DNA from: Andalucia godoyi And28
Lineage: Eukaryota > Protista > Jakobida
Direction: 5' to 3'
DNA: 64,000 nt
Assembly (NCBI GenBank): GCA_009859145.1
Contig: VRVR01000027.1
Location: 195,974 to 259,973, forward strand
Shown here: one piece after another, positions 16,313 through 61,899 of the stretch
How the letters are laid out: each line of letters opens with the position of its first letter
How positions within the stretch are numbered: the first letter of the stretch is position 1
The notes under the pieces: generated by a model
Told to the model about the DNA's origin: nothing
The model's input: the letters and a program-made list of their open reading frames with translations, nothing else
Databases searched by the model: none
Position numbers and translations under genes: made by a program

Positions 16313-16648
16313 GGGTGGAGGTGCCTGTCTCAAATGTAAAGAGAAACCCGCCAGAAAGAGGAGCGAAAGCTTTGATCTGAACAAACACGAGAAGGTGGAA
16401 GAAGCGGAAATGGGAGCAACTGCGCTGCACAGCGAATTCGCCGAATTGCGGTGCGCTTCTTTTGCCGCGCAAATGTCCGCTTGAGTCTATTGAGTAGTGG
16501 AATTCATTTTTCGGTCTTTTTTATGTTCATTGAATAAGAATTTGGCAAGATTTCTGGACATCGTGATCATGCCGTTTGCTGATGAACAGCGCTTCACATA
16601 AGCGCGGGTGCATGCAACAGCCCGACGCCGAGGCCATTCTGTCCGACG

Positions 16649-17233: not shown

Positions 17234-17416
17234 TTTCCCTTGCGTATTTGAGAGAAAAAGGAGAAGAGGAAAAACGCGAGGAGAGCAGGATTTGGGCGAG
17301 TCTGAAATAACGGTGCATCAAGTGACCGGTTGAATCCTGGATTTCCCCGACTCATTAATTCCCTGCAACCGCCCGCTCTCCTCCTTTTCATTTTCTTCGA
17401 GAAATTCAGCCTTTTC

Positions 17417-21130: not shown

Positions 21131-21434
21131 CTGGTTCTTGTTATTCTCGGTTTTTCGATTTTCTCCGAGAATATGCGGAATTGCAGATCTGTCACGGACC
21201 GAACACACTTGTGACCGGGTGGAGCTCCCAAATGGCTCCGAACTTTGTTCGCAAAACTCGTGTATCTCGAACGTGTTTATCCCGGTGCAAGTGCGCGCAC
21301 TTGCTCCTGGTTTTCTCATGCTCTTCATTTCCCCGTGTTCCTCGGAGATTCTCGTCATTTTCCTCCACAGTCAGGGTCTTTTTAAGCCACTTGTTCCCAA
21401 GATTCACATAAAATTAACCCTACACCTCTCCCTG

Positions 21435-23237: not shown

Positions 23238-23499
23238 ACGGATTGTAAGCAAATGTGCTTCTGATTCAACGGGAAACGGTTCTGATGATGCGATTTGAGC
23301 CACACGGACTTCGATTGCAGAGTTGGCTTGTTGTTTGACCAACTTGTTCTGTCTTCGAATGGGAAAGATGCATCCGAGCAAAAACGCGCACTTTATTTGT
23401 AGCGAAACAGCTTTCCTTTCACTTCCTAGCCGCATAGGAAGCTTTCTATGCAGCTTACGTTTTCGTTTGCACTCAGTTCCGCCTACTCGATTGCCCGTG

Positions 23500-24456
23500 T
23501 TACGGGCTCTCGAAAAAGCAGTCGAATTCGTCATCACTCTTCTCCTCAGAGAATTCTTCATCACTCTTCTCCTCAGGGAATTCTTCTGCAAGTTCAAGAT
23601 TGTGCTCCCATCCGTTGCAAGTGCAAACCGGCGACGGCTTCATCTTGGAGGCCAGGACCATCCTCGCGAAGCATTTCTCACACAGCACATTTCCGCATGC
23701 CAATCGAACGTAAGGGCCGGCTTCCTCGTGATCACATGTCTGGCATCCTTCGCTGGTTGCAATCATGGGAATCATCTTCGGTCCGAGAACGTCTTTGAGA
23801 TCCGAGCAAGTTCGCTCAATTCCGAACCTGCCGATTCGTTGAAAGACTGCGAAACGTAACGGCTGGTCTATCATGACGTTCCACCATGCTTCTGAGCATC
23901 CCGTGAACAGCTGAACAAATCTGAGATCATCGCTGAAGTATGGGCGACTGAATGCAATCCAGCGTTTCAAATCTCCGAGGGAAACCAACTCATGAGGTTC
24001 CGGGAAGTCGTCCTCTTGCAGGAGGTCTTCCTCGTCGGCTGCGAGACGAATGGCTTCATTTGCCAGAAGAGATCCCATCCGGGTGATCCTGCGCGATCCA
24101 GAGCCAGGAGGGGCAGGCCAGGGCAACCACGAGGCTGTGGCAGGTACATACTGCCAGAACACTTCCAGGTCATTGGGATGGATATGGTGCCGTGGAAATT
24201 CTTGTTCGAACTTGAGAGCGAGCTTCGGGTACTTGCCGCAGAGGGATTCGACGGAAAGCGCTGCTGCAACGGTTTGCTTCTTATTGCAGCAATCGTACAC
24301 CGTTCTCCCATTCACTTCTCGACGTCGAACAATTCCCCAGCGGCATCCACGGATGAAGAATACGTTTCTGTTCTTCCGTGCCTTGGACATGGGCTGCCGA
24401 GATCCGGAGCCCGAGGGACCTGTTGATGTGGAAACGGAAGTCTTACTGGAACGCAT
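23500..24456 (-). CDS. RING-like zinc-finger protein with possible N-terminal chromo-shadow-like segment, 318 aa
   Basis: C-terminal CQTC-x12-CGN-x2-CEKC-x15-CTC (His replaced by Asn). RGCRWGIVRRREVNGRTVY...KYPKLALKFEQE resembles the HP1 chromo-shadow pattern. Acidic tail with a 27-bp duplication. Confidence 0.6.
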   Translation of the reverse strand: MRSSKTSVSTSTGPSGSGSRQPMSKARKNRNVFFIRGCRWGIVRRREVNGRTVYDCCNKKQTVAAALSVESLCGKYPKLALKFEQEFPRHHIHPNDLEVFWQYVPATASWLPWPAPPGSGSRRITRMGSLLANEAIRLAADEEDLLQEDDFPEPHELVSLGDLKRWIAFSRPYFSDDLRFVQLFTGCSEAWWNVMIDQPLRFAVFQRIGRFGIERTCSDLKDVLGPKMIPMIATSEGCQTCDHEEAGPYVRLACGNVLCEKCFARMVLASKMKPSPVCTCNGWEHNLELAEEFPEEKSDEEFSEEKSDDEFDCFFESP

Positions 24457-24577
24457 GCCTGCTGAAAATGATTCTTTGAAATGGATTAAAGATTAAAAGA
24501 AAACACGAAACCAAGAGAAAACGTTTCATCTCTATTTTTCTCACGGATTTTTTAAGCCATAAACAGGCAGAACGGTA

Positions 24578-25238
24578 TTTTTACATAAACTTTACATAAG
24601 CACAGTCATCTGGGTATCCGTGACCTTCAGCTGCTCCGGTTGGTCAGGAGGTCAGGAACGTCGGACGGAGCGCATCTCGATTTTACATAAGCACAGTCAT
24701 CTGGGTCTCCGCGACCTTCAGCTGCTCTGGTTGCTCAGGAGGTCAGGAACGTCGGACGGAGCGCATCTCGATTTTACATAAGCACAGTCATCCGGGTCTC
24801 CGCGACCCTCAGCTGCTCTGGTTGGTCAGGAGGACCGGCAGGTCGGACGGGGCTGATCTCGATTTTACATACGCCTGGTCATCTGGGTCTCCACGACCTT
24901 CAGCTGCTCTGGTTGGTCAGGAGGACCGGCAGGTCGGACGGAGCTGATCTCGATGTTAGATAAGCACAGTCATCCGGGTCTCCACGACCGTCAGCTGCTC
25001 TGGTTGCTCAGGAGGTCAGGAACGTCGGACGGGGCTGATCTCGATTTTACATACGCCTGGTCATCTGGGTCTCCACGACCGTCAGCTGCTCTGGTTGCTC
25101 AGGAGGTCAGGAACGTCGGACGGAGCGCATCTCGATTTTACATAAGCACAGTCATCCGGGTCTCCACGACCGTCAGCTGCTCCGGTTGGTCAGGAGGACC
25201 GGCAGGTCGGACGGAGCTGATCTCGATGTTAGATAAGC
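24578..25238 (+). repeat. 91-bp tandem array 1 (7 units)
   Basis: Unit starts (CATAAGC-equivalent) at 24595, 24686, 24777, 24868, 24959, 25050, 25141 and 25232, an exact 91-bp period. Confidence 0.97.
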
Positions 25239-25239
25239 C

Positions 25240-26450
25240 TAGTGGTTGCGCTCTTCGTGTTGGAGTGGAAGACGAAGATTTTACCAACCGTTCACTCCTT
25301 GGCATCTGAACATCGCAGCACAGCTCCAACTCTACTGGCGGAAATTCGACATCTGTTCGGAGGAAACACCGAGGGCTTGCGCCAGGGCTGATGCATCCAT
25401 CCTAAGCGTAAATGACGTGATCGTTCATGCCGAGTCGAACGACGCTAGAATTGCATTCTATGAACTCAACGCAGACAACATCAGCAGGTTCGCACACGGA
25501 GGGGTGCAGCGCCAGCAACTCGTGGTATGTATGCAGCCGATCCTGTGTTGGTTCGTGAAATGCTTGGCCCGTGGATATAGAGACTACATCGTGTTCGAAT
25601 CCACCAATCCGACACATGCCCTTCTAATAAGGTGTCGACTATCAGAAGACAACGCACCAATAAGGCAGACAATGGGTGGCTCCGATTCTGTCGGACCTGT
25701 GCCCGCTACCAACTGGTCTCCCAAGGAATTCCACCTGCATCTAGGACCAAGGACCGTCCGATCTGGGTTCCAAGGGGATCACATGGGAGGGCGCCTGGAA
25801 GCATCGAACCCCAACATGACCGACCCACAGGTTTCACGCACTTTCTACTGGACTTCCTGATAGGAAACTCGATCTCGGATACCAATTTCTCCGAAAGTTG
25901 AAGGAGTCGTTCTGCGGATATTCGCAATCAATTCCAAGTGTTCTTGTTCCTGAGATGCGATCCGATGTTTCCTTGAGGACAAGAGGCTACCAGCGAATTC
26001 AGCTTCATTCAGCTTCACGGTCAACCAGCTTAGTAAGGCCATGCCCGTTCGGTGGAAATGTGCCAATCTCAGAAAATCGTCGACGTATAACGAGATTTGA
26101 AGCCCAAGCGAGCGGCTGTGGTCTTTCAGTGGCATCCGAAGCTTCGTGCTGACGTCAGATGTCCAACTCAGCCTGAAGAAGAGTATCTGAAATATGTACT
26201 GCTGCTGTCCCTCCCGAATGCCGCGCAGTGCGGAGAACTGATCGCTCAGGGAAGCCACACGATATCTGTATGTGAGATCTACCGAGAAGAGCTGTTCTCG
26301 CTCTGGGTCAGGTGAACCAACGAGGATCAATCCTCTTATCTGATGCGCGAAGTTTGGAGCAGGAGCATGATGCACGGCCCGCAGGCCGTCAACCAGGCGC
26401 CCCTCTCACCTTGGAAATCAGGACAACCGGACACCGTAGGAGGCTATCTA
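25240..26450 (-). mobile_element. Degenerate DIRS-like (tyrosine-recombinase retrotransposon) reverse transcriptase plus RNase H remnant
   Basis: RLVDGLRAVH...LFSVDL...QYIFQILFFRLSWTSDVSTKL...RSLGLQISLYVDDFL matches the DIRS RT layout (RLIxDLRxLN, SxDL, YQFxxLPFGL, FTK, YxDD). Downstream TLRMDASALAQALG and frameshifted VELEL resemble RNase H motifs; stops and frameshifts are present. Confidence 0.7.
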
Positions 26451-27247
26451 CGTCGGCTGCACTCCGAATCGACCCAGCCGACAGCAGCCGCTGCACCTCA
26501 GCGTCGAGCCATTCCAGATCTGAAATAGGCAACAATCTTCGAGGTTACATCGGATGATACATCGGTGCAAGGTTCAGACCCGCGACAGACACCACTTCCA
26601 GGATCAGAGGAGAAGACGGATGCTCGCTCAATAAGCCGATTCATCTGATATGCACAGCCAGAGCGGCAGGTCAGGCAGGATCTCCTTAGTCAGCACGAAC
26701 CGGCGGCCAAGCGCCATAGAGCCGGTCCTTCTCCGGCCTGTTTCCCTCGTCGTGCATATCATGTTAGCCGCACAGGAACCGCTGTCCACGCAGTACGCGG
26801 CGGCTGATGTAGGAACTGGCGGCCACAGATTTAAAGGCATGCAGCTGAACGTGGGCTCCTCCCCTTTTGACTCACAGGGGATGGAGGTCATGAGCACCGG
26901 CTCCAGCGGGACAAGTGAGGCGAGGGCATACGAAGTTGGCTCTCCCGCCTCAATGTAGAGGGATGCGGGATTAGCTGCGATGGCGGCCGACCGGTGGTCC
27001 AGCTCGCATTCCAATCCGGAGCCAAGTTGCATGCCGGATTCGAACTCTCTTTTCCGACGGAAGCCGAAGATGTGTCGGTTGGATTTCCAACAACGCCCCA
27101 GAACGCGGCTCACTTCCGAATTCGTCCACTGCCTTTCCGTCTCTCTTTTTATTCTTTTCGCTCTTTATGGTTCGCCTAATTTTCTTTTCTTCTTTTCTGT
27201 TCTTCTGTTCCCAGTCTCAGTTATCCTTCAGCTTAATCTCGGCCATC

Positions 27248-28195
27248 ATGCGTTTTGTATTCGCCATTGCTTTTTCCTTGCTACTGGCCATGTCCAGCGG
27301 TCTGTCAACACAGACAACGCTTCCTGAGCTTGAACTTGTGATAGGTCTCGGCATGGAATCATCCTGCCCCACAGTGCGGTACTTCGCCGCTGGGGATGCT
27401 GTGAATCGCATTGCAGTGTCGCCGATCGATTTCACCGAGTACACGATCACGCCGTCGTCAATCACAAGCGGTACCGTTACGAAGGTCGCGTGTTCCATCT
27501 GGCAGGCGGACATCGTGACGGATCCTGCTGGAAAGTTTATTTCGTACACGGGTGCACACAACGCCGGGACCACGCCTTCCGTGTACTACTACATCTGTCT
27601 GTCGGAGACGGGTTGTTCTGTCGATCGCATCTACGCCTCGTTCATCATCACTGCCTTCACGAAGGTGAACTACAATTACACGCTGCCTGCTGCGGTGCCG
27701 ATGACCCGTGGCCAGGCGTTCCTCGCTGCAATTCCTGCACCGCGCTCGACGCCGTACGGATCCGGGGTCACACATCTTGGATTTGACTTGCAGACATATG
27801 TCGGGGGCTCTCAAAGCAAGAAGAAAATCACGTTCGACGGATCGAGCAGTGCGTCTGCGAACATCAAGCTGATTGCCAACGGGGGAATTTCGGTGGTTGC
27901 AAGGCAGGGAGGGCCATACTCGTTTGCAGGCGTGTACACTTCTCCAACGTCGTACTACGTGAATGCGAACAATACGAACGCCGAAACTGCCGTAGCCGCT
28001 TATGGAACTTCGAGCGCGGTCGGCTCTCTGTATGCCGATACCACGACGTACGTGGCGATTCCCCAGGACCGGTATGCCAACATCATATTTACCGCTGTGT
28101 TCGGAGTCACCGGGACCGGCGTGTCCTCAGGTGCGTCCGCTGCATGGATGTCTCCGTTGGTACTGTGCACTCTGGCCGCTCTGCATTTGCTGTAA
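27248..28195 (+). CDS. Secreted, probably GPI-anchored surface protein, about 315 aa, Ser/Thr/Ala/Tyr-rich
   Basis: Signal peptide MRFVFAIAFSLLLAMSSG; C-terminal SSGASAAWMSPLVLCTLAALHLL (small residues then hydrophobic end). Confidence 0.75.
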   Translation: MRFVFAIAFSLLLAMSSGLSTQTTLPELELVIGLGMESSCPTVRYFAAGDAVNRIAVSPIDFTEYTITPSSITSGTVTKVACSIWQADIVTDPAGKFISYTGAHNAGTTPSVYYYICLSETGCSVDRIYASFIITAFTKVNYNYTLPAAVPMTRGQAFLAAIPAPRSTPYGSGVTHLGFDLQTYVGGSQSKKKITFDGSSSASANIKLIANGGISVVARQGGPYSFAGVYTSPTSYYVNANNTNAETAVAAYGTSSAVGSLYADTTTYVAIPQDRYANIIFTAVFGVTGTGVSSGASAAWMSPLVLCTLAALHLL

Positions 28196-28416
28196 TCTAC
28201 CATAAACATGGTGACTGCATGAAGCTTCGTTTATTTAATCAGAAAAGACGTACGTGGCATCCGTCGCCTTGTCGATTTTTTGTGCAGAAGAGCAGAACAT
28301 TCGCTGATGACGGATGCCGAGTTTCTCCAAAACACGAAGCATGCACCACTTCTGTGACACATGCACTCTCCTATTCATTTATAATTCCGTAATCCCGACC
28401 CAGCCAACTAATAAAA

Positions 28417-30198
28417 ATGCCGATTGATCTCCAATCTCTTTGGAACGGTGTCTTGGACGGCTGTGTCGTTCAGCACGAGTTCTTCGGACTCACCTTTGAC
28501 ACTGCAGAGATCCTTCTCGCTGTAGCCGTGCAGGACCCAACACTGCTCGAGCGGAATATTGTCTCGTTGCTGGATGCGGTACGCACGATGGTGCGACCTC
28601 GGCCGTGGGTCTGGTTGATGAAGGCGAGCTGCCTGCGGAATGTTCCAGATGCTAATTTCCTGCGGGTCGCAAACATGCTGCATGCCATCCTGTCAACACG
28701 AGGGATGCGTGTGTTTCTGGAGTTTCATGTAGTTGACATCGGCAATGCAGCTCTCGCTGGTTGGATGGTGGAACACCAACTTGTTTATGCAGATCGGGTG
28801 CTGCAGACAAGCACGTTCCCGTCGGTCATTCTCTCGTTGCTGGATCCATATAGGATGTTCTCACTGGAAGAGGCTTTGAAGATCATGAGACGAGTCTTGT
28901 CGAATTTCCAGGTTTCCCGGGAGGAGAAGCTTGCATTTGCTTCGCACCTGCACCGCCATACGTCTTCCAGCTTGGAAGAGTGCGAGGAATGTTTAATGTT
29001 CATTTGGTTGGGCGAAATGGATCGCGAAACTCTTGCTTTCTTCGAGGTCCTCGTGGGGATCGAGATCCGTGCGCTTGTCCTTGCGCCCAGTGCAATCCAC
29101 GCATTCATTCGTCACGAACATTTCGTGCAGCTGAATTTGCTCGTGGAACAGTTTTCGGTAGACTTTTCGGATCCAGAATACTGGAGATCGATCTCCAGTC
29201 AGGAAATGTTGCGCTTCTTTGTGAACGATCTCGAGATTGATGTCTGGTGGCCGTCCTGGATGGCCGTACCGGAAGCACTGAGAAGAAGCATTCATCAAAA
29301 CGAATTCGCAGTCCGTCCCCGAGAATACGAGGGTTTGTTGCAGTTTGTCCGCTCGGGAGCACGTCCAAGACGGGAAGCCGGAGAACGGGCACGATGGAAT
29401 ATTCGATCCATACTTTTAGCGTCGAATGATATTGTGGAAGCTGACGTTTCTGCAGTCCTTGGAGAAGATGCGACGCGGCTTAACCGGTATTTCCAATGGA
29501 GAAGCGTGCATCCGAACCTGCGGGCCTTTCTTGCCACACTGACACGCCGAGTGCGTGCCCCCGCTTCTGTCTTGACGGCAGCGATGCCAATGACTACCGA
29601 TGAGCAGATATCCCGCATCCTGTCACTTGCTCTGGAGAATCCAACGTGGAGCATGCTGGGCTTCCTGCTTTCCTTCCGTCGAAGCGAGGACGCGGAGTCC
29701 CTGCATGCCAACGCTCTTGTGGTGCGCCGAGATGGACGCCGTGTAGAACGATTTGAGCCGCATGGCCACTGCGCTTCGAATGACATTGTCGAAAGTCGCA
29801 TTCGACGGATCATGTTGCCGATGCTCAGTGCATCCGACCAAGGTCGTTCGTACAACATTCGTCCTCTTAAACAGACTTGTCCCTTTTTGGGTGCACAGGC
29901 GCTGGAAGCCGCTGTGGAATGGGACCGGCTCGATCTTCGAGAAATGCCAGGATTCTGCGCTATCTGGTCTCTCATGGCATTGCACTACTGCATGGTCTAT
30001 CCGTCTTGGTCGATGAGCGAGGTCTCTTCTCATCTCGCCCGCGGCAAGGCGGTCGAAGTAGCGGCCAGAGTCCGACAGTATACCGCGTATGCATGGGCTC
30101 TGCTGAACCAGGATGCGTGGCAAGAAGACGTATTTCCCATTGCGAAAGCGGATGGAGTAGTCGAAAATCAGAGGTACATTGGAACGTTCGCTCCCTAA
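28417..30198 (+). CDS. 593-aa protein with C-terminal clan CE-like (ULP/adenain-type order His-acid-Gln-Cys) cysteine protease domain
   Basis: HANALVVRR...ERFEPHG...LGAQ...GFCAIWS; N-terminal two-thirds are homologous to 21435..23237. Confidence 0.65.
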   Translation: MPIDLQSLWNGVLDGCVVQHEFFGLTFDTAEILLAVAVQDPTLLERNIVSLLDAVRTMVRPRPWVWLMKASCLRNVPDANFLRVANMLHAILSTRGMRVFLEFHVVDIGNAALAGWMVEHQLVYADRVLQTSTFPSVILSLLDPYRMFSLEEALKIMRRVLSNFQVSREEKLAFASHLHRHTSSSLEECEECLMFIWLGEMDRETLAFFEVLVGIEIRALVLAPSAIHAFIRHEHFVQLNLLVEQFSVDFSDPEYWRSISSQEMLRFFVNDLEIDVWWPSWMAVPEALRRSIHQNEFAVRPREYEGLLQFVRSGARPRREAGERARWNIRSILLASNDIVEADVSAVLGEDATRLNRYFQWRSVHPNLRAFLATLTRRVRAPASVLTAAMPMTTDEQISRILSLALENPTWSMLGFLLSFRRSEDAESLHANALVVRRDGRRVERFEPHGHCASNDIVESRIRRIMLPMLSASDQGRSYNIRPLKQTCPFLGAQALEAAVEWDRLDLREMPGFCAIWSLMALHYCMVYPSWSMSEVSSHLARGKAVEVAARVRQYTAYAWALLNQDAWQEDVFPIAKADGVVENQRYIGTFAP

Positions 30199-37826: not shown

Positions 37827-38409
37827 ACAACTTTATCATAATCATTCCTTCTATCATGGTGGGTGCGTGCGAACCGACTGCTTCTGTCCTTCATGTAGGT
37901 ATGATGTTTTCGCTACATAAGAATTTGGCGATCTCAGAAAGTGAGAGAGATACCAATCATCATGGATCACGTCGTTAGCGGTCAGAGGCGCAAACCTACG
38001 GGAGATAAGACAGCGGATGAGACCAAAGGACCAAATTAACGGATGCAGGAATGCTCGACCGGCCACAGAACCTCAGAGGGCGTGAAGAACAGAAGACCCT
38101 TCACCAGACATTCTGACAGGAGTGCAGTCTAGACCTCTCGTCGTCTTCAAGAAGGCCACACACCCAGGGGTTTCTATGTCCAGCAGAGACCTTTCCGTAC
38201 GGTCCCAGAAAGGAGGTCCCCGTTCTGGAGGAAAAGGACGACCTCATAACCTACATACAAAACAAATCGACAGCTCGAAGCAAATGCCTTTCATCGACTC
38301 AAAAATGCAATATCACTCACAGTGCCCCTCCACTCCTGCCAGACTGAATGCAAATGAGAAGAACGTGAAGAATTCTAAAGAAACGACAAATGGGCGAGTT
38401 GATTTGAAC

Positions 38410-39501
38410 ATGAAATCCTGGAAGGACCAGCTTCCAGAAGCCCTCCGTACCCCGCATGAAGACCAGCGAAACAAACGGAGAACGAAGACAACGGATTTCG
38501 ATCTCAAGACCGTGTCGACCTGGACATCTGTCCTCGGATACGTCCGCGTCTCGACGGACATGCAGGAGGCATCGATGGAAAGCCAGACAGCGGCTATCCG
38601 GAAATACGCTGCCGACAGTCTACAGCTTCCAGTGCGTCGCATATACACAGACGAAGGCATCTCAGGAGCGAAAGACGAAACACATCGCCCAGGGCTCGCA
38701 CAGCTCCTTCGGTCCATGCGAAAAGGAGAGATTATTGTCGTCACGGAAGTGAGTCGCCTTGCTCGGAGCATGGACATCGCTGTTCCCCTCCTGCGACAAA
38801 TAGCCCAAGCCGGCTGTCGGTTCATAGAACTTCGAACGAACCTTGACACCTTGGATCCGGCCTCAAAATCATTCTTGATGTTTCATGCGACTTTGGCAGA
38901 AAACGAACGGGAGATGATACGACAACGAGTTAAACGAGGAATGGAACACTGTCGATCCAAAGGATTCGTAATGAGTTGTCCGCCTTACGGGTATAGAGTC
39001 AACCCAGAAACAAGAACACTAGTGCATGACACTGCGACGCGACCCGTCGTCGAACGGATCATCGAAATGCGACGAGAAGGATTCCAGTACGAAAAAATCG
39101 CAGATGCTCTTCCTCTGATGACTGATCTTGGACCTCCAAAGGCACCGCGCGGAGGAGACTACTGGCAACCTCAGACCGTGCGAAACATTTGTGAAAGAGA
39201 ACTGGGAAAGGAACTAGCCGATTCTTGCGGTACGCATACGTGCGCGGATGTTCACGACAGTGACGAAGATGAAAACAGCGTTCAACCAGCTCAGACGGAA
39301 AGCAAAGAGATTAAAAATCCTGATGTCGAGGAATCCGGTACCGAGCTGACGTGCAGCAGGAAAGCAGACCTTGCGCGAAAACCTCTCCCTCTTCTGCGAA
39401 TTCTCGTGCGGAGAAAGAGAATCGAAATTGGGATTTCCGAGGAAGAAGTTGGACTGCTCTCTGCAGACGATTGTGTCGTCCTGTTGACAGAAACTGTATG
39501 A
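38410..39501 (+). CDS. Serine recombinase (resolvase catalytic domain plus recombinase-type DNA-binding extension), about 363 aa; frame open from 38122
   Basis: LGYVRVST (catalytic Ser at 38551), YTDEGISGA, RPGLAQLL, VVTEVSRLARS, AENEREMIRQRVKRG, PPYGY and WQPQTVRNI. Confidence 0.9.
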   Translation: MKSWKDQLPEALRTPHEDQRNKRRTKTTDFDLKTVSTWTSVLGYVRVSTDMQEASMESQTAAIRKYAADSLQLPVRRIYTDEGISGAKDETHRPGLAQLLRSMRKGEIIVVTEVSRLARSMDIAVPLLRQIAQAGCRFIELRTNLDTLDPASKSFLMFHATLAENEREMIRQRVKRGMEHCRSKGFVMSCPPYGYRVNPETRTLVHDTATRPVVERIIEMRREGFQYEKIADALPLMTDLGPPKAPRGGDYWQPQTVRNICERELGKELADSCGTHTCADVHDSDEDENSVQPAQTESKEIKNPDVEESGTELTCSRKADLARKPLPLLRILVRRKRIEIGISEEEVGLLSADDCVVLLTETV

Positions 39502-44634: not shown

Positions 44635-46386
44635 ATGAACGGTATAGGTGCGCAACAGAACAGTGGTCAACTCCAACCTGCAGCGATCGGCCCGAAGTCA
44701 CCAGTCTTCCGTACGACAGGAGGCATAGGAAGAAGCGTAAACCCGGAAGCATCAGAACGCAGACATACTCCCGATCCAGATGCGCAGTCTTGCATTCGCG
44801 CCCCATACCCAGATGTATGGAGTCAGCGCATAGACAAGACGCAATTGCGAGGAGCACAGCGAGAAGCAATTGCAGCAGTTCATTTGCATTTTCACCAGCT
44901 GAAGATCGAGGATGATCTGAACGTCATTCGAACTTTCGTGGAAAAGGAACATCTTCTGAAAAACAAGCTTGCGGAAAACGACAGGGAGAGAGATGATCGC
45001 CTCGAAACGGAACTGAGAGGAGTGCAGAGGCAGACAAGAATTCGCGCAGAGCGCAACAAACCAGCATTGATTCACCTTCCAATGGGGATGGGTAAAACAG
45101 GGATCGCAATGACTCTTCCGTTCGGTATGGTGAATGGACGAGTGCTCTTCGTCGCTCCAAACCGAGAAATTGCTCGCGAAGCTGTGAGGAATGCCGCATG
45201 GAAGTCAGCGAAGTGCTTCATCCGAAACATTAGAGTCCTTTCCACGGATAGTCGACATCCCTCGATTGGAGTGATTGTGAGCGCGAACGGGAATCCAGAG
45301 ACCATGCGTGAATTGGCAAGCCTGGAGGTCGTTGCTGCAGACCCGAGTTGTTTAAATCAACTTCGTGATTGTGATTTCATAATTACAACACGACATCGCT
45401 TGCAGAATACGAGAGGATCACTTCAACAGCTTCCGCGAGACTACTTCGATCTCATCATCGTGGATGAAGCGCACCACGCCACCTCTTGCACTTATCGCCA
45501 GATCCGCAAGCACTTCGTCACTGCAAGGCTCGTGTACATGACCGGAACACCGCATCGCGCAGACGGAACGCAGTTGGACGCGACACTCATTTACCGCTGT
45601 CCACGAAAGCAAGCATTTGAAGAAAGGGCCTGGAAACAACTCGTCGTGGAAACCATCGAAGTATCCGAGCTGATATTTCTTGCATCAAAGCCATGTGAAA
45701 AACCTATTGTGTTCAACTCTTGTGAAAAAGTCCGACGAGCAGGATACTTGAAATGGGTTCGAAACAGTGTAGCACGATCGCGAGCAACCATGGAATGGAC
45801 CGTGGAACGTGTACTGCAGTTATTGAGAGAGAAGAACAGACCGGGGACGTCGATTCACCACCAGGCGATTCTGCAAGCCATGGATTTGCAACACGCAATC
45901 CAGCTTCAAGAAATCTTTAATTCTCATGCAGAGAACGGCGATGAGCGATTCAAAGCAATTGCAATCGGATCTAGAAATATTCCATGCTACCCGATGCAAC
46001 TAAGATCTTCCAATGACTTGCGAAACTTCCGAGAAGGGGGATATGACGCTGTTGTGCACGTGGGAACCCTAGGAGAAGGCTTTGATTTGAAAAGTCTCTC
46101 CATCTGTGGCATCTGTCGGCCGTTCGCATCACAAGCACCTTTGGACCAGCTTATTGGCAGAGTGATCCGAGCATTTTCTCCAGATACCCAAGGACTCGAT
46201 CCTAGCATAGACAATGTGGCTCATATTGTTGTCCACGATGCTCTTGGACTGGGGGCCATGATACGCGCTTTCGTTACAGAGGACCGCTTGCAACTGAGAT
46301 TTCGAGGAAAACGAGGTCTTGCGAGAGGAACGCCTCAAGTGAGTCAGTCGATTTCGAACAGGCACGTGCGGACGCACCGTTTGTGA
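44635..46386 (+). CDS. Superfamily 2 helicase/ATPase, DEAH type, type III restriction Res-subunit-like, 583 aa
   Basis: Q-motif-like LRGAQREA, IHLPMGMGKTG (I), LFVAPN (Ia), LIIVDEAHH (II), MTGTPHR (III), VGTLGEGFD (V), QLIGRVIR (VI). Confidence 0.88.
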   Translation: MNGIGAQQNSGQLQPAAIGPKSPVFRTTGGIGRSVNPEASERRHTPDPDAQSCIRAPYPDVWSQRIDKTQLRGAQREAIAAVHLHFHQLKIEDDLNVIRTFVEKEHLLKNKLAENDRERDDRLETELRGVQRQTRIRAERNKPALIHLPMGMGKTGIAMTLPFGMVNGRVLFVAPNREIAREAVRNAAWKSAKCFIRNIRVLSTDSRHPSIGVIVSANGNPETMRELASLEVVAADPSCLNQLRDCDFIITTRHRLQNTRGSLQQLPRDYFDLIIVDEAHHATSCTYRQIRKHFVTARLVYMTGTPHRADGTQLDATLIYRCPRKQAFEERAWKQLVVETIEVSELIFLASKPCEKPIVFNSCEKVRRAGYLKWVRNSVARSRATMEWTVERVLQLLREKNRPGTSIHHQAILQAMDLQHAIQLQEIFNSHAENGDERFKAIAIGSRNIPCYPMQLRSSNDLRNFREGGYDAVVHVGTLGEGFDLKSLSICGICRPFASQAPLDQLIGRVIRAFSPDTQGLDPSIDNVAHIVVHDALGLGAMIRAFVTEDRLQLRFRGKRGLARGTPQVSQSISNRHVRTHRL

Positions 46387-51287: not shown

Positions 51288-51991
51288 GATTTCGAGAAGT
51301 CTTTCGGGGAATGTGTCTTTCTAAGCTGCAGCTGCAATTCTTGTGGCACACAAACGGACAAGTATCGATTAAGGCGCTGGAAATGCCGCCAACGTTCCAC
51401 TGCTGAAGAAAATGCTTGCTTCTTCTGTTTTGATATGCTGAATAAATTGACAGTAACACGACCAAAGACGTCCCTGCTGTTCCCACATTGACTGAGCAGG
51501 AGATACATGAGAGTGTGGCTCTCGAACCGATGACATACATCTTCACAGAATACCATGAATCCGATGAAACAGACGAGATCTTTGACTCTTCGTCCAGCCC
51601 TCAAGAAATCAACGCGGGCAACTTCGAAGTTGTAAGTACGACCTCATCGTCTGGACCATGCACTGCAATCCTCTGTAGGCCGAGCTTCGATGAAACACAA
51701 GGATACACGACTTTGATGGAATACTTTGGAGTGATTTATAAGCAGGATTATGTTCGAATGATGAAAAAGCGAACGAAAGAACAGAGAACGAACGTTGGCC
51801 GGGTCTTTACAGTAACCGATGAAAGCCGTCGTAACAGCGACTCCAAACTGTGCTCCGAAGGATTCCGTTTGCAGAAGATTCGCATGCATTGCACATTCCA
51901 TATTAGGATGAGCAACGGAGATCTGCTCGCATTCGCATGACTCGGAAGACTTGGCGACGAAAAAGAATTTGAACGAGGTTCTGAAGATCAT
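51257..51991 (-). pseudogene. Decayed paralog of the C-terminal KEN region of the 53862..57206 gene
   Basis: VFCEDVCHRFESHTLMYLLLSQCGNSRDVFGRV versus VFRQDACHRYESHTLVYLLLSQSGKNGDLFGRI. VKDLVCFIG sits at the position of the (D)LLRFIRN motif. In-frame TGA at 51644-51646 joins two track ORFs. Confidence 0.65.
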
Positions 51992-53861: not shown

Positions 53862-56800
53862 TCAACGATGCTCGAGAAATTCGTCGGGATCAGATTTTGG
53901 AAGAAATCCGCAAGCTTGAAGAGATTTAAAGATCTGACGATCTGTCAATGTCAACTGACTCTCGTTTTCCAACAAGATCATCGACAGTTCACTGACAATT
54001 TCAACAATACGACCGAATAGGTCTCCATTCTTTCCACTCTGGCTAAGTAAAAGATACACAAGAGTGTGACTCTCATATCGATGACACGCATCTTGACGGA
54101 AAACTCGTGATAGCAGCGGGGTATGGCATGCTAAGTTACGGATGAAACGTAAAACGAAAAAGACACACATCCGTCCATGCTGGCACAGGCGCTTGTACAC
54201 GGAATAATTGTTCTTGGGATGGACACAGTATTCCATTAACGCCTGTTCAAACGAAATGACATCCAACATTGATTCTAACATCATAGAATCTGGTGATGAT
54301 CGCTGACCTGGCGACGAAAAAGGAAGCATGGAAGACGGTGACACGGTGTGCCTCAAAAAGTGATTCAACGCAAAGGAACTGTGCGCATGTTCGAAATTCT
54401 GGTAATGTAAGCCTTCAATGCCTTGAACTTCTCGAAACAAATCTGCTAACGGCTGAGCAACGTCAACAACAAATTGTACACACTGGCTTGCGCTCCAAAA
54501 GAAAGGATGCATCACAACACCTTTCATTTTCAAACGGTCAGTGTAATCATATGCTACCATTCGACTCAGAAGATGGGAAAACAAGATGCGGGACGTCGTC
54601 GTCGAATGAACATCTGTTCGCAAGTGAGTCTGAATATGACCATCCCGCAACGACTGCAAGTCTCTATTTACCATTTCCGAATAAGTAAAGTACTCATTCT
54701 CGTCCCCAGAAGAGAATAGATCAGAATTCAAGGCTGAAGAAACTTGACAGGCATGCTGCAAATACTCGCTGGTCATACCCATTCGTTGTACTTGCGCGAG
54801 GTACAACATAGTCCATCCGAGACTGAAGACATCCGAACGGGGCGTCCGCAACGCTGGTTGGTGCACGAATTCGGGAGGTCGCCACCAAGGAGATCCAAGT
54901 GGATAGTTCGGATTTGCACTGGAATCGACGTACGTTTGCGCCTCCAAACGAACGGAAGAAATTCCAAAATCTGTGAGACAAAAGGAGTAAGAACCGCTCG
55001 ATCCATTGTTATTCAACAAGATGTTGCTCGGCTTGATATCGCGATGAATTAACTGTGCCTCATGAAGTGCAGCGACAGTGCTGGCAAGGAGATTCAGCTG
55101 GTGAAACAATAATCTGGGCGACAGATTCTCCTGAATCCGTCGATTCTTTCCGAATACATCTCCTTCAGGATAATAAGACATAACAAGAGCGCTCTCTTGC
55201 TGCAAAACACTTCCGACACTCCTTCCGGAATCTACAGCTCCAATGTACAAGACTCGAACCAAACTAGGAAACTGGCCAGTCGACTGCCGAGGAATACGGC
55301 CAAATAACTCTTCCTCTCCCAAATGGTCCATTTGGTCAGAAAAGAATTGTTGAGTTTTTGCCTCTTCGGTTCCATCGCCGATGGACCGACGGAAGATCTT
55401 CACAGCAACGGGACCGTGGTGCAGGGTGAGACCTCGATACACAACTGCTTCAGCACCGCTCCCTATCACACACCGAACACAAAACAAGCACACTGGCAGG
55501 CCACCATGAAGAACCATCAAAAGAGAGCTCTCATTCTCATCTAGAAAGATCTCATCGGTCGAGAACAGATCCCGCAACTGCTGGATAAAGGCAGCATATC
55601 GCTCGCTCAATGATATGATTTCTTCCACGATGCGGCCGTTGCGATAGGTAGCGTATTCCACATTTCCGCAGATTGTCAATTTCATGATTCCTGACGGAAG
55701 CTCGTCCACAAAACGACCCTCCATTGTAGCGTTGTGTTCCATCCATAATTCACGACAGTCTTCGTCGGACACCAAGCGACCAGATCGAATGCGTCCGATA
55801 AAGTTCGCAATGCACGCATGAGAAGATCGCTCAAACAATAATATCTCACCGCAGTCGCAGTTGGCCAAAGACGTAAAAGACTGTGAACCATGCATACATT
55901 CATATGATGAATGGCTCCCGAGACACATTCGGATTCCAGCAGACACAACCTGGAAGTCGGGGAAACGACGAACATCCGTAAGGCTGACAGAAACTCCGTT
56001 TCGGAGACTAAAATAGTCGGAAGGAAGTATCGCAAAACCTTTCTGCGACGACCATGTAACAGATGCACAACCAAGTGAGACGTTGCGCTGACCTGTATCA
56101 CTATCAAGAGTCCACAGACTGTATCTCACTTCCTTCAATTCGCCCTCTATGTGTCTCAAAGATAGACACAGAAGAATCCGTGAGCCCCAGCGAAACCAGA
56201 GAACCATGGTTCCGTCGACTTCAATTTGTACATGGTGCAGACAGAACGTACGCTGGTTGGTTGGTGCCACATGGTTGGTATTTTCATCAACAATAATCTC
56301 TGCAATTGTCAACCCACGCACCCGCAATGCACCATTTGTAAAATGAAATTCAAGCGAAGAGTTCTCAAAAGGGTGTAAATTGCCGAACGTGCCAATTTCA
56401 GAGTCTTCGCAACCCTCGTGATGTAAAAAACATCCAACAACAAATTTCTTGCCTTCATTATCGAAAGTTGCGCCGAATACTGGCTCCTGGGCAGAATCTG
56501 GTCCAAACGCGCTTAGCGGCGAAAAAAGAAATCCAAAAAGTGATGGCCTGTTCAAAGTCGTATACGAAGGGGAAATTTGAATGTGGACGTTCAAATCCTC
56601 TTTTAACACCTTTGAGATTGCATTACTAGAATCATCGTCTCCCAGTAAAGAGAGACAGCGATCAAACCTCCACAAATTGATTTGTTCAAACTGGAACATC
56701 CAATCACAAGCGATTTCAGAAACGCTCGCTTGACATTCATGCAGCAACGACTTTGATGCCCACCCCAAGGATTGAGTGTTTTCCTTGGATAACATTGAGT

Positions 56801-57206
56801 ACTTGTCGTGATACCTCGTCCGTGAATCTGGATTCACTGGATTAACTCCGCGCAAACCTAATTCCACAATGTTGCGATGAAGAATGACATTATCCACAAA
56901 TGGACGGACATAGTCAGGAACAATGAGAACAAGAAGTTCGTCGAATTGAGAAAGATGCTCCTGAATCTCTGGGCATTTTCTACGCTCGAAATCATCAGCT
57001 GTGAACAAAGACTCCTGGCGAGCAGTACTCCATAATCCTAAAAAGACAACCGACTCATCACTGTCCAGATGTTTGTGAATCAGATTTAGCAATTGTTTGG
57101 CGTCAAGAACAGGACTTGTCATCCAACACGAAGAAAGTGATAGCCATCGTTCATTTTTGGTAGGAACAATAAGAGTGTTCTCAAGATCAAACAGAACTGG
57201 AAGCAT
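53862..57206 (-). CDS. Soluble protein kinase fused to C-terminal KEN (IRE1/RNase L-type) ribonuclease domain, about 1114 aa, with about 580-aa unknown N-terminus
   Basis: Kinase: IGSGAEAVVY, VAVK, IHRDIKPSNILL, TDFG, GSPWWRPPE, SDVFSLG. KEN: VVMHPFFWSASQCVQFVVDVAQ (compare IRE1 [22 protein letters not shown]) and LRFIRNLACH (compare RNase L LKFIRNLGEH). No signal peptide or TM helix seen; likely ATG at 57206, frame open to 57314. Confidence 0.85.
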   Translation of the reverse strand: MLPVLFDLENTLIVPTKNERWLSLSSCWMTSPVLDAKQLLNLIHKHLDSDESVVFLGLWSTARQESLFTADDFERRKCPEIQEHLSQFDELLVLIVPDYVRPFVDNVILHRNIVELGLRGVNPVNPDSRTRYHDKYSMLSKENTQSLGWASKSLLHECQASVSEIACDWMFQFEQINLWRFDRCLSLLGDDDSSNAISKVLKEDLNVHIQISPSYTTLNRPSLFGFLFSPLSAFGPDSAQEPVFGATFDNEGKKFVVGCFLHHEGCEDSEIGTFGNLHPFENSSLEFHFTNGALRVRGLTIAEIIVDENTNHVAPTNQRTFCLHHVQIEVDGTMVLWFRWGSRILLCLSLRHIEGELKEVRYSLWTLDSDTGQRNVSLGCASVTWSSQKGFAILPSDYFSLRNGVSVSLTDVRRFPDFQVVSAGIRMCLGSHSSYECMHGSQSFTSLANCDCGEILLFERSSHACIANFIGRIRSGRLVSDEDCRELWMEHNATMEGRFVDELPSGIMKLTICGNVEYATYRNGRIVEEIISLSERYAAFIQQLRDLFSTDEIFLDENESSLLMVLHGGLPVCLFCVRCVIGSGAEAVVYRGLTLHHGPVAVKIFRRSIGDGTEEAKTQQFFSDQMDHLGEEELFGRIPRQSTGQFPSLVRVLYIGAVDSGRSVGSVLQQESALVMSYYPEGDVFGKNRRIQENLSPRLLFHQLNLLASTVAALHEAQLIHRDIKPSNILLNNNGSSGSYSFCLTDFGISSVRLEAQTYVDSSANPNYPLGSPWWRPPEFVHQPALRTPRSDVFSLGWTMLYLAQVQRMGMTSEYLQHACQVSSALNSDLFSSGDENEYFTYSEMVNRDLQSLRDGHIQTHLRTDVHSTTTSRILFSHLLSRMVAYDYTDRLKMKGVVMHPFFWSASQCVQFVVDVAQPLADLFREVQGIEGLHYQNFEHAHSSFALNHFLRHTVSPSSMLPFSSPGQRSSPDSMMLESMLDVISFEQALMEYCVHPKNNYSVYKRLCQHGRMCVFFVLRFIRNLACHTPLLSRVFRQDACHRYESHTLVYLLLSQSGKNGDLFGRIVEIVSELSMILLENESQLTLTDRQIFKSLQACGFLPKSDPDEFLEHR

Positions 57207-57424
57207 ATTGGAACGTTTGAATTCGTAGAAACGGTGAAAAGAAACGCAAAAGCGAACTTCTGGTGCAGACTTGAAATTTGGGACCCGGGCTGGCATTGCT
57301 TTTTGAGCTGACATGTCATGTCATCCGAAACCGCTTTTCTGAATTTCCGGTGATCTCGGCTTCTGAGGTGCGGAATTCTTTTCCGCGATGAGTTTTCCTG
57401 TTAATCCTGTTCAACGACCCTGCA

Positions 57425-60400
57425 ATGCTTGACCATTCACTGGAAATTCCACTTTCGCAACTTCGACTCAAGGAATTGTCGTTTGGTATCCCGAGTTCAT
57501 GGTCGTCGGCAGTTATAAGAGTGTATCCGATTTTATGTACACTGTATACGCAATTGACACCTGATGATCGACGACTGGCAAAGCTTTGGCCACGGAACGA
57601 GACAGGAAATGAAACGACTCCTGTGGTGAGACTGTTTTGCATTTCGGTTTCAGGACAAGAGGCAATATCCGCAGATGATGTTTCTCAGATCAAGGACAGT
57701 ATTCTGAAATGGTCGTCTAAATTATTTTGGGGGGTTGTCGGAATTGAAGAGCCATGGTGTGTTTTGGACTCAGAATTTAAAGACCTTTCTTTGTCTGCGT
57801 TCAGTTCTTGCACTGCTCTGCGTCATTGGAAATATGATGCGAATCATGAAATACGACTGCACAAACCTTTGATGTGCTATTGTGTCCGTAAATCAGATGA
57901 GGAAGGCTTGCTGAGCCGTGGCGGCATGGGAAAGTCCACAATCTTACAATTGTCCAATGCGTTATCGGTCAACGGATTTAATCGCAAATCAGTGGATCGC
58001 TCTATGGAAGCTTCTGCATGTTTTGGAAAGTTTTCTCTTCACGGTGTTGGATCTCATGACGATTTCCGAACAGTAATTTCGGATTGTGCATCTTGTACTA
58101 CTACCAATACGCCACAGCTTTACTGTTTGGAGTTGCAGATTTCCAAGCAGAAAAGCGTACCACCTGTATACGCCTATTGCACAGATGTCAGTGCTTGTTG
58201 CTGTGTGGTGTTGCTAAGTTGGACCTGGAATTCGTGTGCGAAGGGCCGAGTTTCTTTCTTGGAGCTCTCCATCCGCACTCGTTTGCCGTTGATGTATGCA
58301 CACGAGAAGATGGAGAATCTGATGCAAACGCTCTGTCGTCATTCTGACGGGCAGTCGCTCATGGAAGTCTTGGACTGCATCGGGGTAGGTGGATGCGGGG
58401 CGGTGTATCGCGTGCTTCTCGGATCACAGAAAAAAATGTTTGCCTGTAAGGTGTCATGCCATCCTGATGTTCAGCACGTGGAAGAAACTACATGGAGTGC
58501 TTTAGATGGTCATTCGCATATTGCACCAATTGTTTTTGCTCACGACGGAGCAGTGTTTACAGAGTACTTTGATCATGGTTCATTGAAGGACTACATTTCA
58601 TCCACAGACTGGTCGACGCGATGGATGTCATCACCGCGCGAGATGTTACTTGTTTGTCGTCATGTGGCTTCTCAGATTGCTTCTGCTGTTGGATACATGC
58701 ACTCTCTGGAGTACATGCATCTTGACTTGAAACCAGAAAACGTGCTTGTGTCTCATGAATTATGGATTCATGAAAACATCGAGAAGGGTATCGTTGAAAT
58801 TTGCGATTCCAAGTGTGTCGATGCCATCCGTTCGATGCATGTGTGCCTGTGTGATTTTGGCCTTGCTCAAGTTGAGAAGACTGCGAAGCCTGTGTTGGGA
58901 ACGCCAGGATGGAACAGTCCGGAACAACAACGATATGAAAAATCCACTACCGCATCCGATGTTTTTTCTCTAGGATTGGTTTTGTCGTGGTTGCTTCATC
59001 CTCAGAATGCTCGTTTGGATGACGACTCTTCGAGTTCTTTTGAGAAATGGCAAGATTCATTTCGATGTTCAGGGATTTCTGAGAACCTTTTAGAATTCGT
59101 TGATTGTGTGTGGTTACGAGTAATGGAGCGAATTCTGTCTCGCGATTTCCCGCGTAGGCCGACCGCGTTTCACGTGGCCAATGCCATTCGAACTAGTTGC
59201 CGTCCACATCTTGCCATATACACGTCTCCGAGTGATGCGAGACGGCTAGCTTCGTCCCGGGAACATACTCTGCTTATTTTTGAAGAAATGTTTGGAAATA
59301 ATACGCCCGACTATTTTGAACATTGTTGTCACTTAGTATCTGGCCTTCGTCGTGGAAATCACAGTGCGTGTGTTGTCAGATTATTCCCTTTGGAATGCGT
59401 GTCGTCGCTTTTGAAGGAAGGTCTGGGCACAAATCTTGTATGCAAAGTCGCAAGCTGTTTGTCTGATCTTGGTCAGCTGAAACCTGTCGTTCCGCTCCTG
59501 AGTGGTGTGTTGGAGCGGTCATTGACAGGAACAAACCAGAATGTCACAGTTGATTCTATAAGGAACAATCTGGGTTTATGTCTTCTTCATCAAGGAAAGT
59601 GCGAAGACGCACTTTCAATGTTTCAATCCGTTTTGAAAATGAACATCGAGAGTTTCGGCGAGGAAGACTTGAAGACGCTGGAAGTGCGGGCTAACATTGC
59701 ACAATGTTTTCATTTTATTGGAAAGCATTCGGAAGCTATTGAACAATTCAAATATGTTGTTTCGATGCAAGAGAAGATGCTTGGCATTAAACACCCTAGA
59801 ACCCTGCGATCGCGGATCGAGTTGGCTCTGATATTGCAGTCCGAAGGCAAGTATGATGCGGCGCTGGAGATGTTGGAATCTCTTCTTGAGATTGTAATCG
59901 AGGTTCTGGGTGCTGATCGTGCAGTGACACTCGCATGTCGAAGCAACATTGCTGTTTGTCATCGCAGCCTCGGACACTACGATGTTGCACGAGAACAGCT
60001 TGAATCGTTGATTGCTGTTCAAGAGGGGGTTTTCGGTTCGAGACACCTGGACACACTGCGATCGCGCATCGACTTGGCTCTGATATTGCAGTCTGAAGGC
60101 AAGTATGATGCAGCGCTGAAGATGTTGGAATCTCTTCTTGAGATTGTAATCGAGGTTCTGGGTGCTGAGCACCCAATTACTCTCACATGTCGAAGCAACA
60201 TTGCTGCTTGTCATCGCAGCCTCGGACACTACGGTGTTGCACGAGAACAGCTTGAATCGTTGATTGCTGTTCAAGAGGGGGTTTTCGGTTCGAGACACCT
60301 GGACACACTGCGATCGCGGAACAGCTTAGCTCTGACATTGCAGTCCGAAAGCAAGTATGATGCGGCGCTGGAGATGTTGGAATCTCTTCTTGAGGCTGAA

Positions 60401-61899
60401 TTGGAGGTCCTGGGTGCCGAGCATCCAGCGACGCTTTCACGTCGGCATGACATTGCTCTGTGTCATCGCGACCTCGAAGAGTATGATGTTGCACGAGAAC
60501 AGCTTGAATCGTTGATTGTTGTTCAGGAGCTGGTTTTCGGTGTGACTCATTCTGACACGCTACTTTCGCGAGAAGATTTGGCCTACACATTGCAATTTGA
60601 CGGAAAGAATGATGCGGCGCTGGAGATGTTGGAATCTCTTCTTGAAACTGAATTGGAGGTCCTGGGTGCCGAGCATCCGGCGACGCTTTCACGTCGGCAT
60701 GACATTGCTCTGTGTCATCGCGACCTCGGACACTACGATGTTGCACGAGAACAGCTTGAATCGTTGATTGCTGTTCAAGAGGGGGTTTTCGGTTCGAGAC
60801 ACCTGGACACACTGCGATCGCGGAACAGCTTAGCTCTGACATTGCAGTCCGAAAGCAAGTATGATGCGACGCTGGAGATGTTGGAATCTCTTCTTGAAAC
60901 TGAATTGGAGGTCCTGGGTGCCGAGCATCCGGCGACGCTTTCACGTCGGCATGACATTGCTTCATGTTTACGAGCACAAAGGAAATATGGTAGTGCGATT
61001 GAGCACTTGAAGAATTGACAGCTATCAAGACCCAACTTTTTGGCGCTGGACATGTCGACACTTTAGAGTCAAGAAAGGACGTTGCTTCATCCGTATGCGA
61101 TCAAGGGAACTACAAGATGACCCTCTCACGATTTCAGGATGTTCACATCGCTGCAGAACAGTCTTTCGGCAGTAGTCATCCTTTTACGTGCACCTGTCTG
61201 TATGATGTTGCCCATTGTTTGAAACTCAGCAGAGAATACGACATAGCACTTCAGGAGTTTGAAACCTTGTTGGATATTCAAGAGAAACGTCTCGGAGTCC
61301 AGCATCCCGAAGTTTTGCGTATTCGGAACAGTACTGCTTCGTGTCGCATGCTTCAAAGTGACTTAGATGTTCCACTGAAGCTGTTGGAATGCCTACTCAA
61401 AGATCAGGAGCAAGTCCTTGATCCTGAAGATGCAATTACCCTCGATATTCGTTACAACTATGGAAAATGCCTTATGTTACTACATAAGGATACAGCGATA
61501 TCGGAATACAAAGCGGTTTTACATGATCGACAGCGGCTGCTGGGAACAGATCATCCTGATACGTATGAGATGTGTCATGGAATTGCGTATTGCCTAATGG
61601 ATCAAGGCAAGTATGAGGACGCCCTAGAGGAGTTTTCGTCTGTTGTGGATTCACAGCAGCGACTTTTGGGTGATTTGCATCCGATGACGTTGACTACGCG
61701 ACACAGCATTGCCCGGTGTCGCATGCTCAAAGAGGATTACGATGCCGCATTATTAGGATATCGAGACGTTCTACGCAATCGAGAACAAGTTCTTGGACCA
61801 GATCATCCAGATACCCATGCAACGTCTCGCGATCTCAATCGCTGCCTTGAGCAAGCTGGAGTTTGCGTGTTATGCAGCGAAACGCAAGAAGTCCTGTAG
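57425..61899 (+). CDS. Protein kinase (non-RD, HLD) plus long array of 42-aa kinesin-light-chain-type TPR repeats, about 1490 aa if the single-base frameshift near 61010 is corrected
   Basis: IGVGGCGAVY, FACK, MHLDLKPENVL, CDFG, GTPGWNSPE and SDVFSLG. TPR units such as LGAEHPATLSRRHDIALCHRDLGHYDVAREQLESL. ORFs 57425..61018 and 61015..61899 join in repeat register (HL-EELTAIKTQLFGAGHVDTL) on adding 1 nt. Confidence 0.88.
59770..60990 (+). repeat. Intragenic 252-bp (2 x 42 aa) near-identical tandem repeat encoding alternating A/B TPR units
   Basis: Equivalent positions at 59806, 60058, 60310, 60562 and 60814. Confidence 0.93.

Follow-up and report, generated by a model that had tools for sequence, protein, structure and literature searches.

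A probable soluble kinase-KEN protein with an orphan N-terminal region in the jakobid Andalucia godoyi

A 64,000-nucleotide (nt) stretch of nuclear DNA from the jakobid Andalucia godoyi And28 (GenBank assembly GCA_009859145.1, contig VRVR01000027.1, positions 195,974 to 259,973), referred to here as the window, contains on its minus strand an open reading frame (ORF) of 1150 codons plus a stop that runs without interruption through positions 53862 to 57314. The encoded protein consists of an orphan N-terminal region (residues ∼1 to 590), a protein kinase (residues 616 to 939), and a 215-residue helical tail (residues 936 to 1150). Judged from its sequence, this is probably (with a likelihood of roughly 0.6) a soluble IRE1-type kinase joined to a diverged endoribonuclease domain of the KEN/HEPN type and preceded by the orphan region. 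The original prediction had placed a soluble kinase-KEN ribonuclease of a microbial eukaryote at positions 53862 to 55470, a span that turned out to be the kinase-plus-tail portion of the longer ORF. All of the motifs it named (VAVK, HRD, DFG, HPFFW..QF..DV, and FIRNLACH) were located in the 1150-residue protein, the Ser/Pro-rich insertion that it described in the KEN-like tail was found at residues 992 to 1011, and the source organism, A. godoyi, is indeed a microbial eukaryote. The features of the gene are as follows.

53862 to 57314, minus strand: the whole ORF, proposed as the correct gene model for ANDGO_07190 on the basis of the open frame and a EukProt match

55545 to 57314, minus strand: the N-terminal region, residues 1 to 590, with no recognisable domain

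54498 to 55469, minus strand: the protein kinase domain, residues 616 to 939 (Pkinase, E value of 1.5e-23), with K639, HRD, N764, and DFG intact

55398 to 55409, minus strand: VAVK, residues 636 to 639, containing the kinase Lys K639

55038 to 55046, minus strand: HRD, residues 757 to 759, the kinase catalytic loop

54963 to 54971, minus strand: DFG of the kinase, residues 782 to 784

54446 to 54557, minus strand: the annotated 112-nt GT..AG "intron" of ANDGO_07190, which encodes residues 920 to 956 (VAYDY..HPFFWS..DVAQPL) and whose excision frameshifts the tail

53865 to 54509, minus strand: the KEN-like helical tail, residues 936 to 1150, with helix 1 homology, an RNase L-like catalytic helix, and an alignment-dependent AlphaFold2 model

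54495 to 54509, minus strand: HPFFW, residues 936 to 940, followed by QFVVDV, at the junction of the kinase and KEN helix 1

54282 to 54341, minus strand: the Ser/Pro-rich variable insertion SPSSMLPFSSPGQRSSPDSM, residues 992 to 1011, inside the tail, variable or absent in the paralogues and gapped relative to canonical KEN sequences

54123 to 54140, minus strand: FIRNLACH with R1059, N1060, and H1064, the putative HEPN/KEN catalytic motif (R-x4-H), invariant in four paralogues

The protein is represented in EukProt by ANDGO_07190, which shows 100% identity to the ORF translation across 77% of the ORF. The deposited model is only 909 amino acids (aa) long. Its start is placed at Met37 instead of the first ATG, and it leaves out a 112-nt segment bounded by GT and AG, which changes the frame, brings in a stop 26 codons on, and removes ∼190 conserved codons of the tail. 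The residues encoded inside that annotated intron, 920 to 956, are the segment of the protein most similar to IRE1 (hhalign E value of 1e-8), and the equivalent segment is translated in the gene models of all three paralogues. Beyond the acceptor site of the annotated intron, the unspliced frame is open for 194 further codons, with a probability (P) of about 3e-5 at the local base composition, and these codons are 70% identical to the paralogue ANDGO_06880 (P0125). Given the IRE1-like coding content, the paralogue models, the 194-codon open frame, and the identity to P0125, we judged the annotated intron to be an annotation artefact. At the other end of the gene, the ATG is preceded at a distance of 9 nt by an in-frame TGA, and a divergently transcribed neighbour has its own ATG 110 nt away; for these two reasons an upstream exon is unlikely. 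The public annotation of ANDGO_07190 needs correction, as the nuclease-like tail is deleted in it.

Pkinase (residues 616 to 939) was the only domain that Pfam identified in the whole protein, and when the entire protein, its N-terminal region, and its tail were run against Pfam, NCBIfam, and PADLOC, generic kinase matches were all that appeared. The residues K639, H757-R758-D759, N764, and D782-F783-G784 are present and are invariant in the paralogues. When the PDB was searched with the kinase core alone (residues 600 to 925, excluding the junction with the tail), the first 14 distinct sequences were all IRE1, at 45 to 40 bits, followed by EGFR (38 bits) and STK25 (36 bits). By sequence ranking, the kinase is thus assigned to the IRE1 type, with a lead that is small but consistent, and its motifs make it look active, in agreement with the intact kinase that had been predicted.

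KEN domains are metal-independent endoribonucleases that leave 2',3'-cyclic phosphate ends. For comparison with the tail, an IRE1-type KEN profile (A1) was built from 26 fragments and an RNase L-type KEN profile (A5) from 8 fragments, the RNase L query having been verified against PDB entry 4OAU. Using hhalign, the single target sequence matched the IRE1 KEN profile with an E value of 1.3e-8 at KEN helix 1. A family profile of residues 905 to 1150 matched the same profile with an E value of 9e-13 (97.8%), in an alignment confined to kinase helix alphaI and KEN helix 1, and phmmer of the tail against the PDB likewise matched IRE1 only over helix 1 (LLSRM...HPFFWS...QFVVDV). Against the RNase L KEN profile, the family profile gave an E value of 4e-8 and one collinear alignment, extending from HPFFW through FIRNLACH, with the latter placed on FIRNLGEH. 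These alignments show significant homology between the beginning of the tail and KEN helix 1. The helix that carries the putative catalytic motif is hydrophobic, and 8 of its 10 residues (LRFIRNLACH) match those of RNase L (LKFIRNLGEH). This helix was the sole signal when a tail profile without helix 1 (A3) was aligned with RNase L (score of 27.5, P of 0.0027), and its score was reached by 1 in 300 column shuffles of A3. The motif residues R1059, N1060, and H1064 are invariant in the four A. godoyi paralogues, whose tails are 70%, 46%, and only 26% identical to that of the target, and a MAFFT alignment of 54 sequences (the family together with 50 canonical KEN sequences of IRE1 and RNase L) placed R-N in one invariant column. 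Divergence among the paralogues proceeds equally fast in the tail, the kinase, and the N-terminal core, which points to a comparable constraint on all three. The apparent membership of the tail in the KEN group is supported by helix 1 and the catalytic motif and not by the curated Pfam profile.

Several results weigh against a KEN nuclease. Neither the tail, with or without its Ser/Pro insertion, nor any of the three paralogues matched PF06479 at E values up to 10, so that the HMMER check proposed with the original prediction was negative. The A3 profile retained no similarity to the IRE1 KEN profile (138 of 300 shuffles scored as high), and a PDB search with A3 found nothing. At the column of the catalytic Tyr (Y1043 of yeast Ire1), the target has H1046 and the paralogues have Q, P, or T, in a stretch where the alignment is uncertain. 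Relative to canonical KEN domains, the tail has three or four insertions. An AlphaFold2 (AF2) prediction of the kinase plus tail, with the four-paralogue alignment only, gave a predicted local distance difference test (pLDDT) value of 30. A second run, on residues 905 to 1150 with the 54-sequence alignment that included the canonical KEN sequences, gave a pLDDT of 82.9 and a predicted template modeling score (pTM) of 0.81. The top 50 Foldseek matches of that model in the PDB were all IRE1 kinase-RNase chains, with a probability of about 1.0, template modeling (TM) scores of 0.44 to 0.45, and E values of 0.018 or worse; a TM score to IRE1 of just 0.45 at an E value of 0.02 belongs with the unfavourable results. 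The confident AF2 model is compatible with a KEN domain but is not independent proof of one, because its alignment supplied the KEN signal. The KEN identity foreseen for the tail therefore held in part: helix 1 is homologous (E values of 9e-13 and 4e-8) and R-N-x3-H is invariant, whereas PF06479 is not matched and the Tyr column is not conserved. Similarly, the nuclease motif had been described as one shared by IRE1 and RNase L, and the kinship is marginal with RNase L (P of 0.0027) and absent with the IRE1 KEN profile. A KEN fold is proposed for the whole tail.

The region ahead of the kinase has no relatives outside A. godoyi in the collections searched. An exhaustive search with the N-terminal 600 residues against 1.84 billion representative proteins returned the protein itself and three A. 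godoyi proteins only. No match to the region was found in Pfam, NCBIfam, PADLOC, or the PDB sequences, and profiles of the tail and of the N-terminal region found no relatives in JGI metagenome contigs and IMG/VR. A core common to the paralogues spans residues 199 to 590 (nt 55545 to 56720), and conservation of residues 1 to 198 among the paralogues was not demonstrable. Neither the target nor its three paralogues has a candidate transmembrane helix by hydropathy, and no signal peptide was found in any of them. The highest Kyte-Doolittle window (2.03) is at residues 599 to 617, and a transmembrane helix there was rejected, as this segment directly adjoins the glycine-rich loop and corresponds in the alignment to N-lobe strands of IRE1. 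Ankyrin repeats were not found by Pfam at E values up to 1 for the whole protein or up to 10 for the N-terminal region, and none were found in the paralogues. These results bear out the description of a protein with no signal peptide or transmembrane helix (the sole hydrophobic peak is the kinase N-lobe, and a TGA precedes the ATG by 9 nt), with no ankyrin repeats, and with an unknown N-terminal region of about 580 aa; that length was correct, and the region is an orphan outside A. godoyi.

Two candidate relationships of the N-terminal region were dismissed. Flavivirus E proteins appeared in a search of the PDB with the A7 profile at E values of 0.24 or worse and were considered chance matches, and an HAD-phosphatase motif in FDLENTLIV (residues 42 to 50) had no Pfam support and was not conserved in the paralogue P0126. 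Just before the kinase, at residues ∼500 to 565 (nt 55620 to 55815, minus strand), there is a periodic Gly/aromatic pattern (F.G....G.L ... EGRFV.E.P.GI.K....G.VE..YRNG). It is conserved in all four paralogues and recalls MORN-type beta-hairpin repeats; it has no Pfam or profile support and is offered as a lead.

By sequence, the target gene belongs to a set of four or more paralogues specific to A. godoyi, accompanied by a decayed fragment nearby. The other three, ANDGO_07774, ANDGO_06880, and ANDGO_07409, carry the automatic names nek3, NTF6, and ppk4, and the four are 27 to 73% identical. They were obtained by exhaustive search; a word-seeded search with the full protein gave the protein itself and two weak kinases, missing the paralogue that is 73% identical. 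One of them, P0125 (ANDGO_06880), has two EukProt accessions of identical sequence, and its 688 aa begin within the N-terminal core; the double listing and truncated start suggest that the genome contains a recent duplicate or truncated copies at other places. The decayed fragment lies 2.3 kb downstream of the target gene.

51455 to 51592, minus strand: a decayed paralogous tail fragment of 48 codons, 52% identical to residues 1056 to 1103, with the motif His changed to Phe and the frame broken by stops

The fragment overlaps a 150-aa ORF on the plus strand (51488 to 51940). Since R-N-x3-H is invariant in the intact genes and its His is lost in the decayed copy, the comparison of sequences suggests that the motif has been kept by selection in the intact genes. 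In the literature, no paper was found that connects A. godoyi with IRE1 or that describes this gene family.

Four other explanations of the gene and its product were weighed. Two of them concern the gene model. If the public model were right, the 112-nt segment would be a real intron and the product a 909-aa kinase without a nuclease tail. The intron does stand in the deposited ANDGO_07190 model, and with its GT..AG ends and 112-nt length it falls within the range of 55 to 756 nt reported for A. godoyi introns (PMC7050145). However, introns were present in just 12% of 864 curated A. godoyi genes, so that the genes are mostly intronless (about 88% of those examined) (PMC7050145), and the segment in question codes for the stretch most similar to IRE1 (E value of 1e-8), is kept as coding in all three paralogue models, and is followed by 194 open codons (P of about 3e-5) with 70% identity to P0125. 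We regard a real intron as very improbable. Alternatively, the gene might encode an ordinary IRE1 of the endoplasmic reticulum (ER) membrane whose signal peptide, luminal domain, and transmembrane helix had been missed, as could be thought from the IRE1-type kinase and from the automatic naming of one paralogue as ppk4, the fission yeast IRE1. Against this stand the lack of a hydrophobic segment compatible with a transmembrane helix in any of the four proteins, the stop codon 9 nt before the ATG, the start of a divergent gene 110 nt away, and an N-terminal region with no similarity outside the family, all of which leave an overlooked membrane IRE1 hardly credible.

The other two explanations accept the gene model and concern the tail. 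It is unlikely, but a good deal less far-fetched, that the tail derives from a KEN domain that no longer cuts RNA and serves as a dimerisation or RNA-binding scaffold, making the protein a regulated kinase. Non-catalytic HEPN domains are known (PMC3710099), and that precedent, together with the unconserved catalytic Tyr column, the several insertions, and a divergence so extreme that PF06479 is not matched, would fit a dead nuclease. It fits less well with a motif that is invariant in all four paralogues despite a tail identity of 26% and that has lost its His in the single clearly decayed copy. The resemblance to IRE1 could also stop after the kinase and the first helix, the remaining ∼190 residues being an unrelated helical domain in which R-N-x3-H is coincidental. 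Past helix 1 there is indeed no profile or PDB sequence similarity of conventional significance, and the Foldseek result (E value of 0.02, TM score of 0.45) comes from a model biased by its alignment. Yet the motif follows helix 1 in the right order, at a spacing of 100 to 123 residues compared with about 83 to 94 in RNase L; it sits in a hydrophobic helix that matches LKFIRNLGEH of RNase L at 8 of 10 positions, with 1 of 300 shuffles exceeding the score; and the default hhalign path unites helix 1 and the motif in a single alignment. Coincidence is, on balance, decidedly unlikely. We therefore retain the reading of a soluble IRE1-type kinase with a diverged KEN/HEPN endoribonuclease domain as the probable one.

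The protein shares features with both IRE1 and RNase L. IRE1 is known for the unconventional splicing of a bZIP mRNA (HAC1, XBP1, or bZIP60) during ER stress. The A. godoyi kinase core is closest to IRE1, with VAVK, HRD, and DFG intact as in the active IRE1 kinase; it leads straight into HPFFWS..QF..DV, the first KEN helix, and R-N-x3-H is spaced as in R-N-K-K-H-H of IRE1. In contrast to IRE1, the protein has no signal peptide, luminal sensor, or transmembrane helix and has the 590-aa orphan region in their place. Its tail shows no detectable similarity to the KEN domain of IRE1 once past helix 1, lacks conservation of the catalytic Tyr, and contains several insertions. The gene is part of a multicopy, species-specific family, in contrast to the conserved gene for IRE1. 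RNase L, the 2',5'-oligoadenylate (2-5A)-dependent ribonuclease, is a pseudokinase that has lost its catalytic residues. With RNase L, the protein has in common a soluble architecture of sensor, kinase fold, and KEN domain, a catalytic helix (LRFIRNLACH) that is closest to LKFIRNLGEH, a spacing of helix 1 to the motif that is nearer to RNase L than to IRE1, and a lineage-restricted family, which is consistent with a role in conflict. It differs in having no ankyrin repeats, which in RNase L bind 2-5A, in a kinase that keeps all catalytic residues, and in the absence of a PF06479 match. RNase L arose within jawed vertebrates (PMC10400998), and any resemblance in role of the A. godoyi family would therefore be convergent. 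The label "RNase L-like" given in the original prediction is thus apt as an analogy of architecture and does not extend to membership, for which ankyrin repeats, a pseudokinase, and a PF06479 match are all missing. As far as sequence can tell, the protein is IRE1/RNase L-like in architecture and a member of neither group, and it appears to represent a new version of the kinase-KEN architecture, soluble and specific to its lineage.

Other KEN and HEPN architectures have been described by Anantharaman et al. in 2013, including kinase-KEN proteins with ankyrin or CCCH domains, KEN-UBI or KEN-BRCT fusions, and expansions of solo KEN proteins in Oikopleura and monocots (PMC3710099). The A. godoyi family resembles these in its lineage-specific expansion, in the variety of partner domains, and in a conserved Rx4-6H motif. 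However, none of the described families has the N-terminal region found here, and they were found via recognisable KEN similarity. A later survey defined ten clades of KEN proteins that were identified using PF06479 (PMC10400998). The present family, being below the Pfam threshold, would escape surveys of that type. With a family invisible to PF06479 and a public model that has no tail, domain surveys of KEN and RNase L evolution miss it.

The remainder of the window was also inspected. Head to head with the target gene is a gene at 57425 to 61018 (plus strand) encoding a protein of 1197 aa, with a 310-aa N terminus of unknown type, a kinase, and a long array of near-identical TPR_12/TPR_10 repeats. 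The continuation of the array in an ORF in another frame at 61015 to 61899 (plus strand) suggests that the repeats contain a frameshift, an intron, or an assembly slip. A serine recombinase at 38122 to 39501 (plus strand; Resolvase E value of 1e-35, PHROG integrase E value of 1e-50) and a ResIII/DEAD-type DNA helicase at 44635 to 46386 (plus strand) sit among ORFs without a family match, 8 to 15 kb from the target gene, in what looks like a mobile-element or virus-derived insertion. The G+C content is about 0.44 to 0.50 in most of positions 32000 to 64000, where the target gene and the recombinase are found, compared with 0.51 to 0.55 in positions 14000 to 30000, the topoisomerase region, which hints that the lower-G+C half is compositionally distinct and possibly younger. 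Ordinary housekeeping genes lie in the window's other half, at 230 to 3397 (minus strand), 4779 to 7706 (plus strand), and 17330 to 21130 (plus strand). They encode two P-type ATPases, of which one carries a heavy-metal-associated domain, and a type II DNA topoisomerase.

The way in which a cytosolic protein of these three parts might work may be inferred by analogy with IRE1 and RNase L. The N-terminal region of ∼590 aa would presumably be a sensor or assembly module, and an activating input on it, possibly the novel one suggested in the original prediction, would lead to self-association. The kinase domains of the associated proteins would then trans-autophosphorylate or bind nucleotide and pack back-to-back, as in IRE1 and RNase L. 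Such a dimerisation would bring two tails together, so that R1059, N1060, and H1064 could form a metal-independent RNase site at the dimer interface and cut cytosolic RNA. With regard to biological function, the existence of a small species-specific family, with at least four paralogues and a decayed fragment, suggests a lineage-specific role in stress or conflict, that is, a defence-type decay of RNA, rather than the conserved ER unfolded-protein response. A bolder proposal, which we put forward as doubtful though worth stating, is that this jakobid independently evolved an RNase L-like innate defence. Here, a fast-diversifying, species-specific family of soluble sensor-kinase-KEN proteins would use its orphan N termini to sense a non-self or stress ligand and would trigger global or selective RNA decay. 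If true, this would constitute a eukaryotic parallel to the HEPN abortive-infection systems of bacteria.

Jakobids are among the deepest-branching eukaryotic lineages. To our knowledge, the kinase-KEN module has been characterised in just two roles, that of IRE1 in ER stress and that of RNase L in vertebrate antiviral defence. A soluble, multicopy, fast-evolving jakobid version, if true, would mean that the kinase-KEN module has been reused for a third input outside animals, and it would offer a tractable case for how HEPN nucleases get wired to new sensors.

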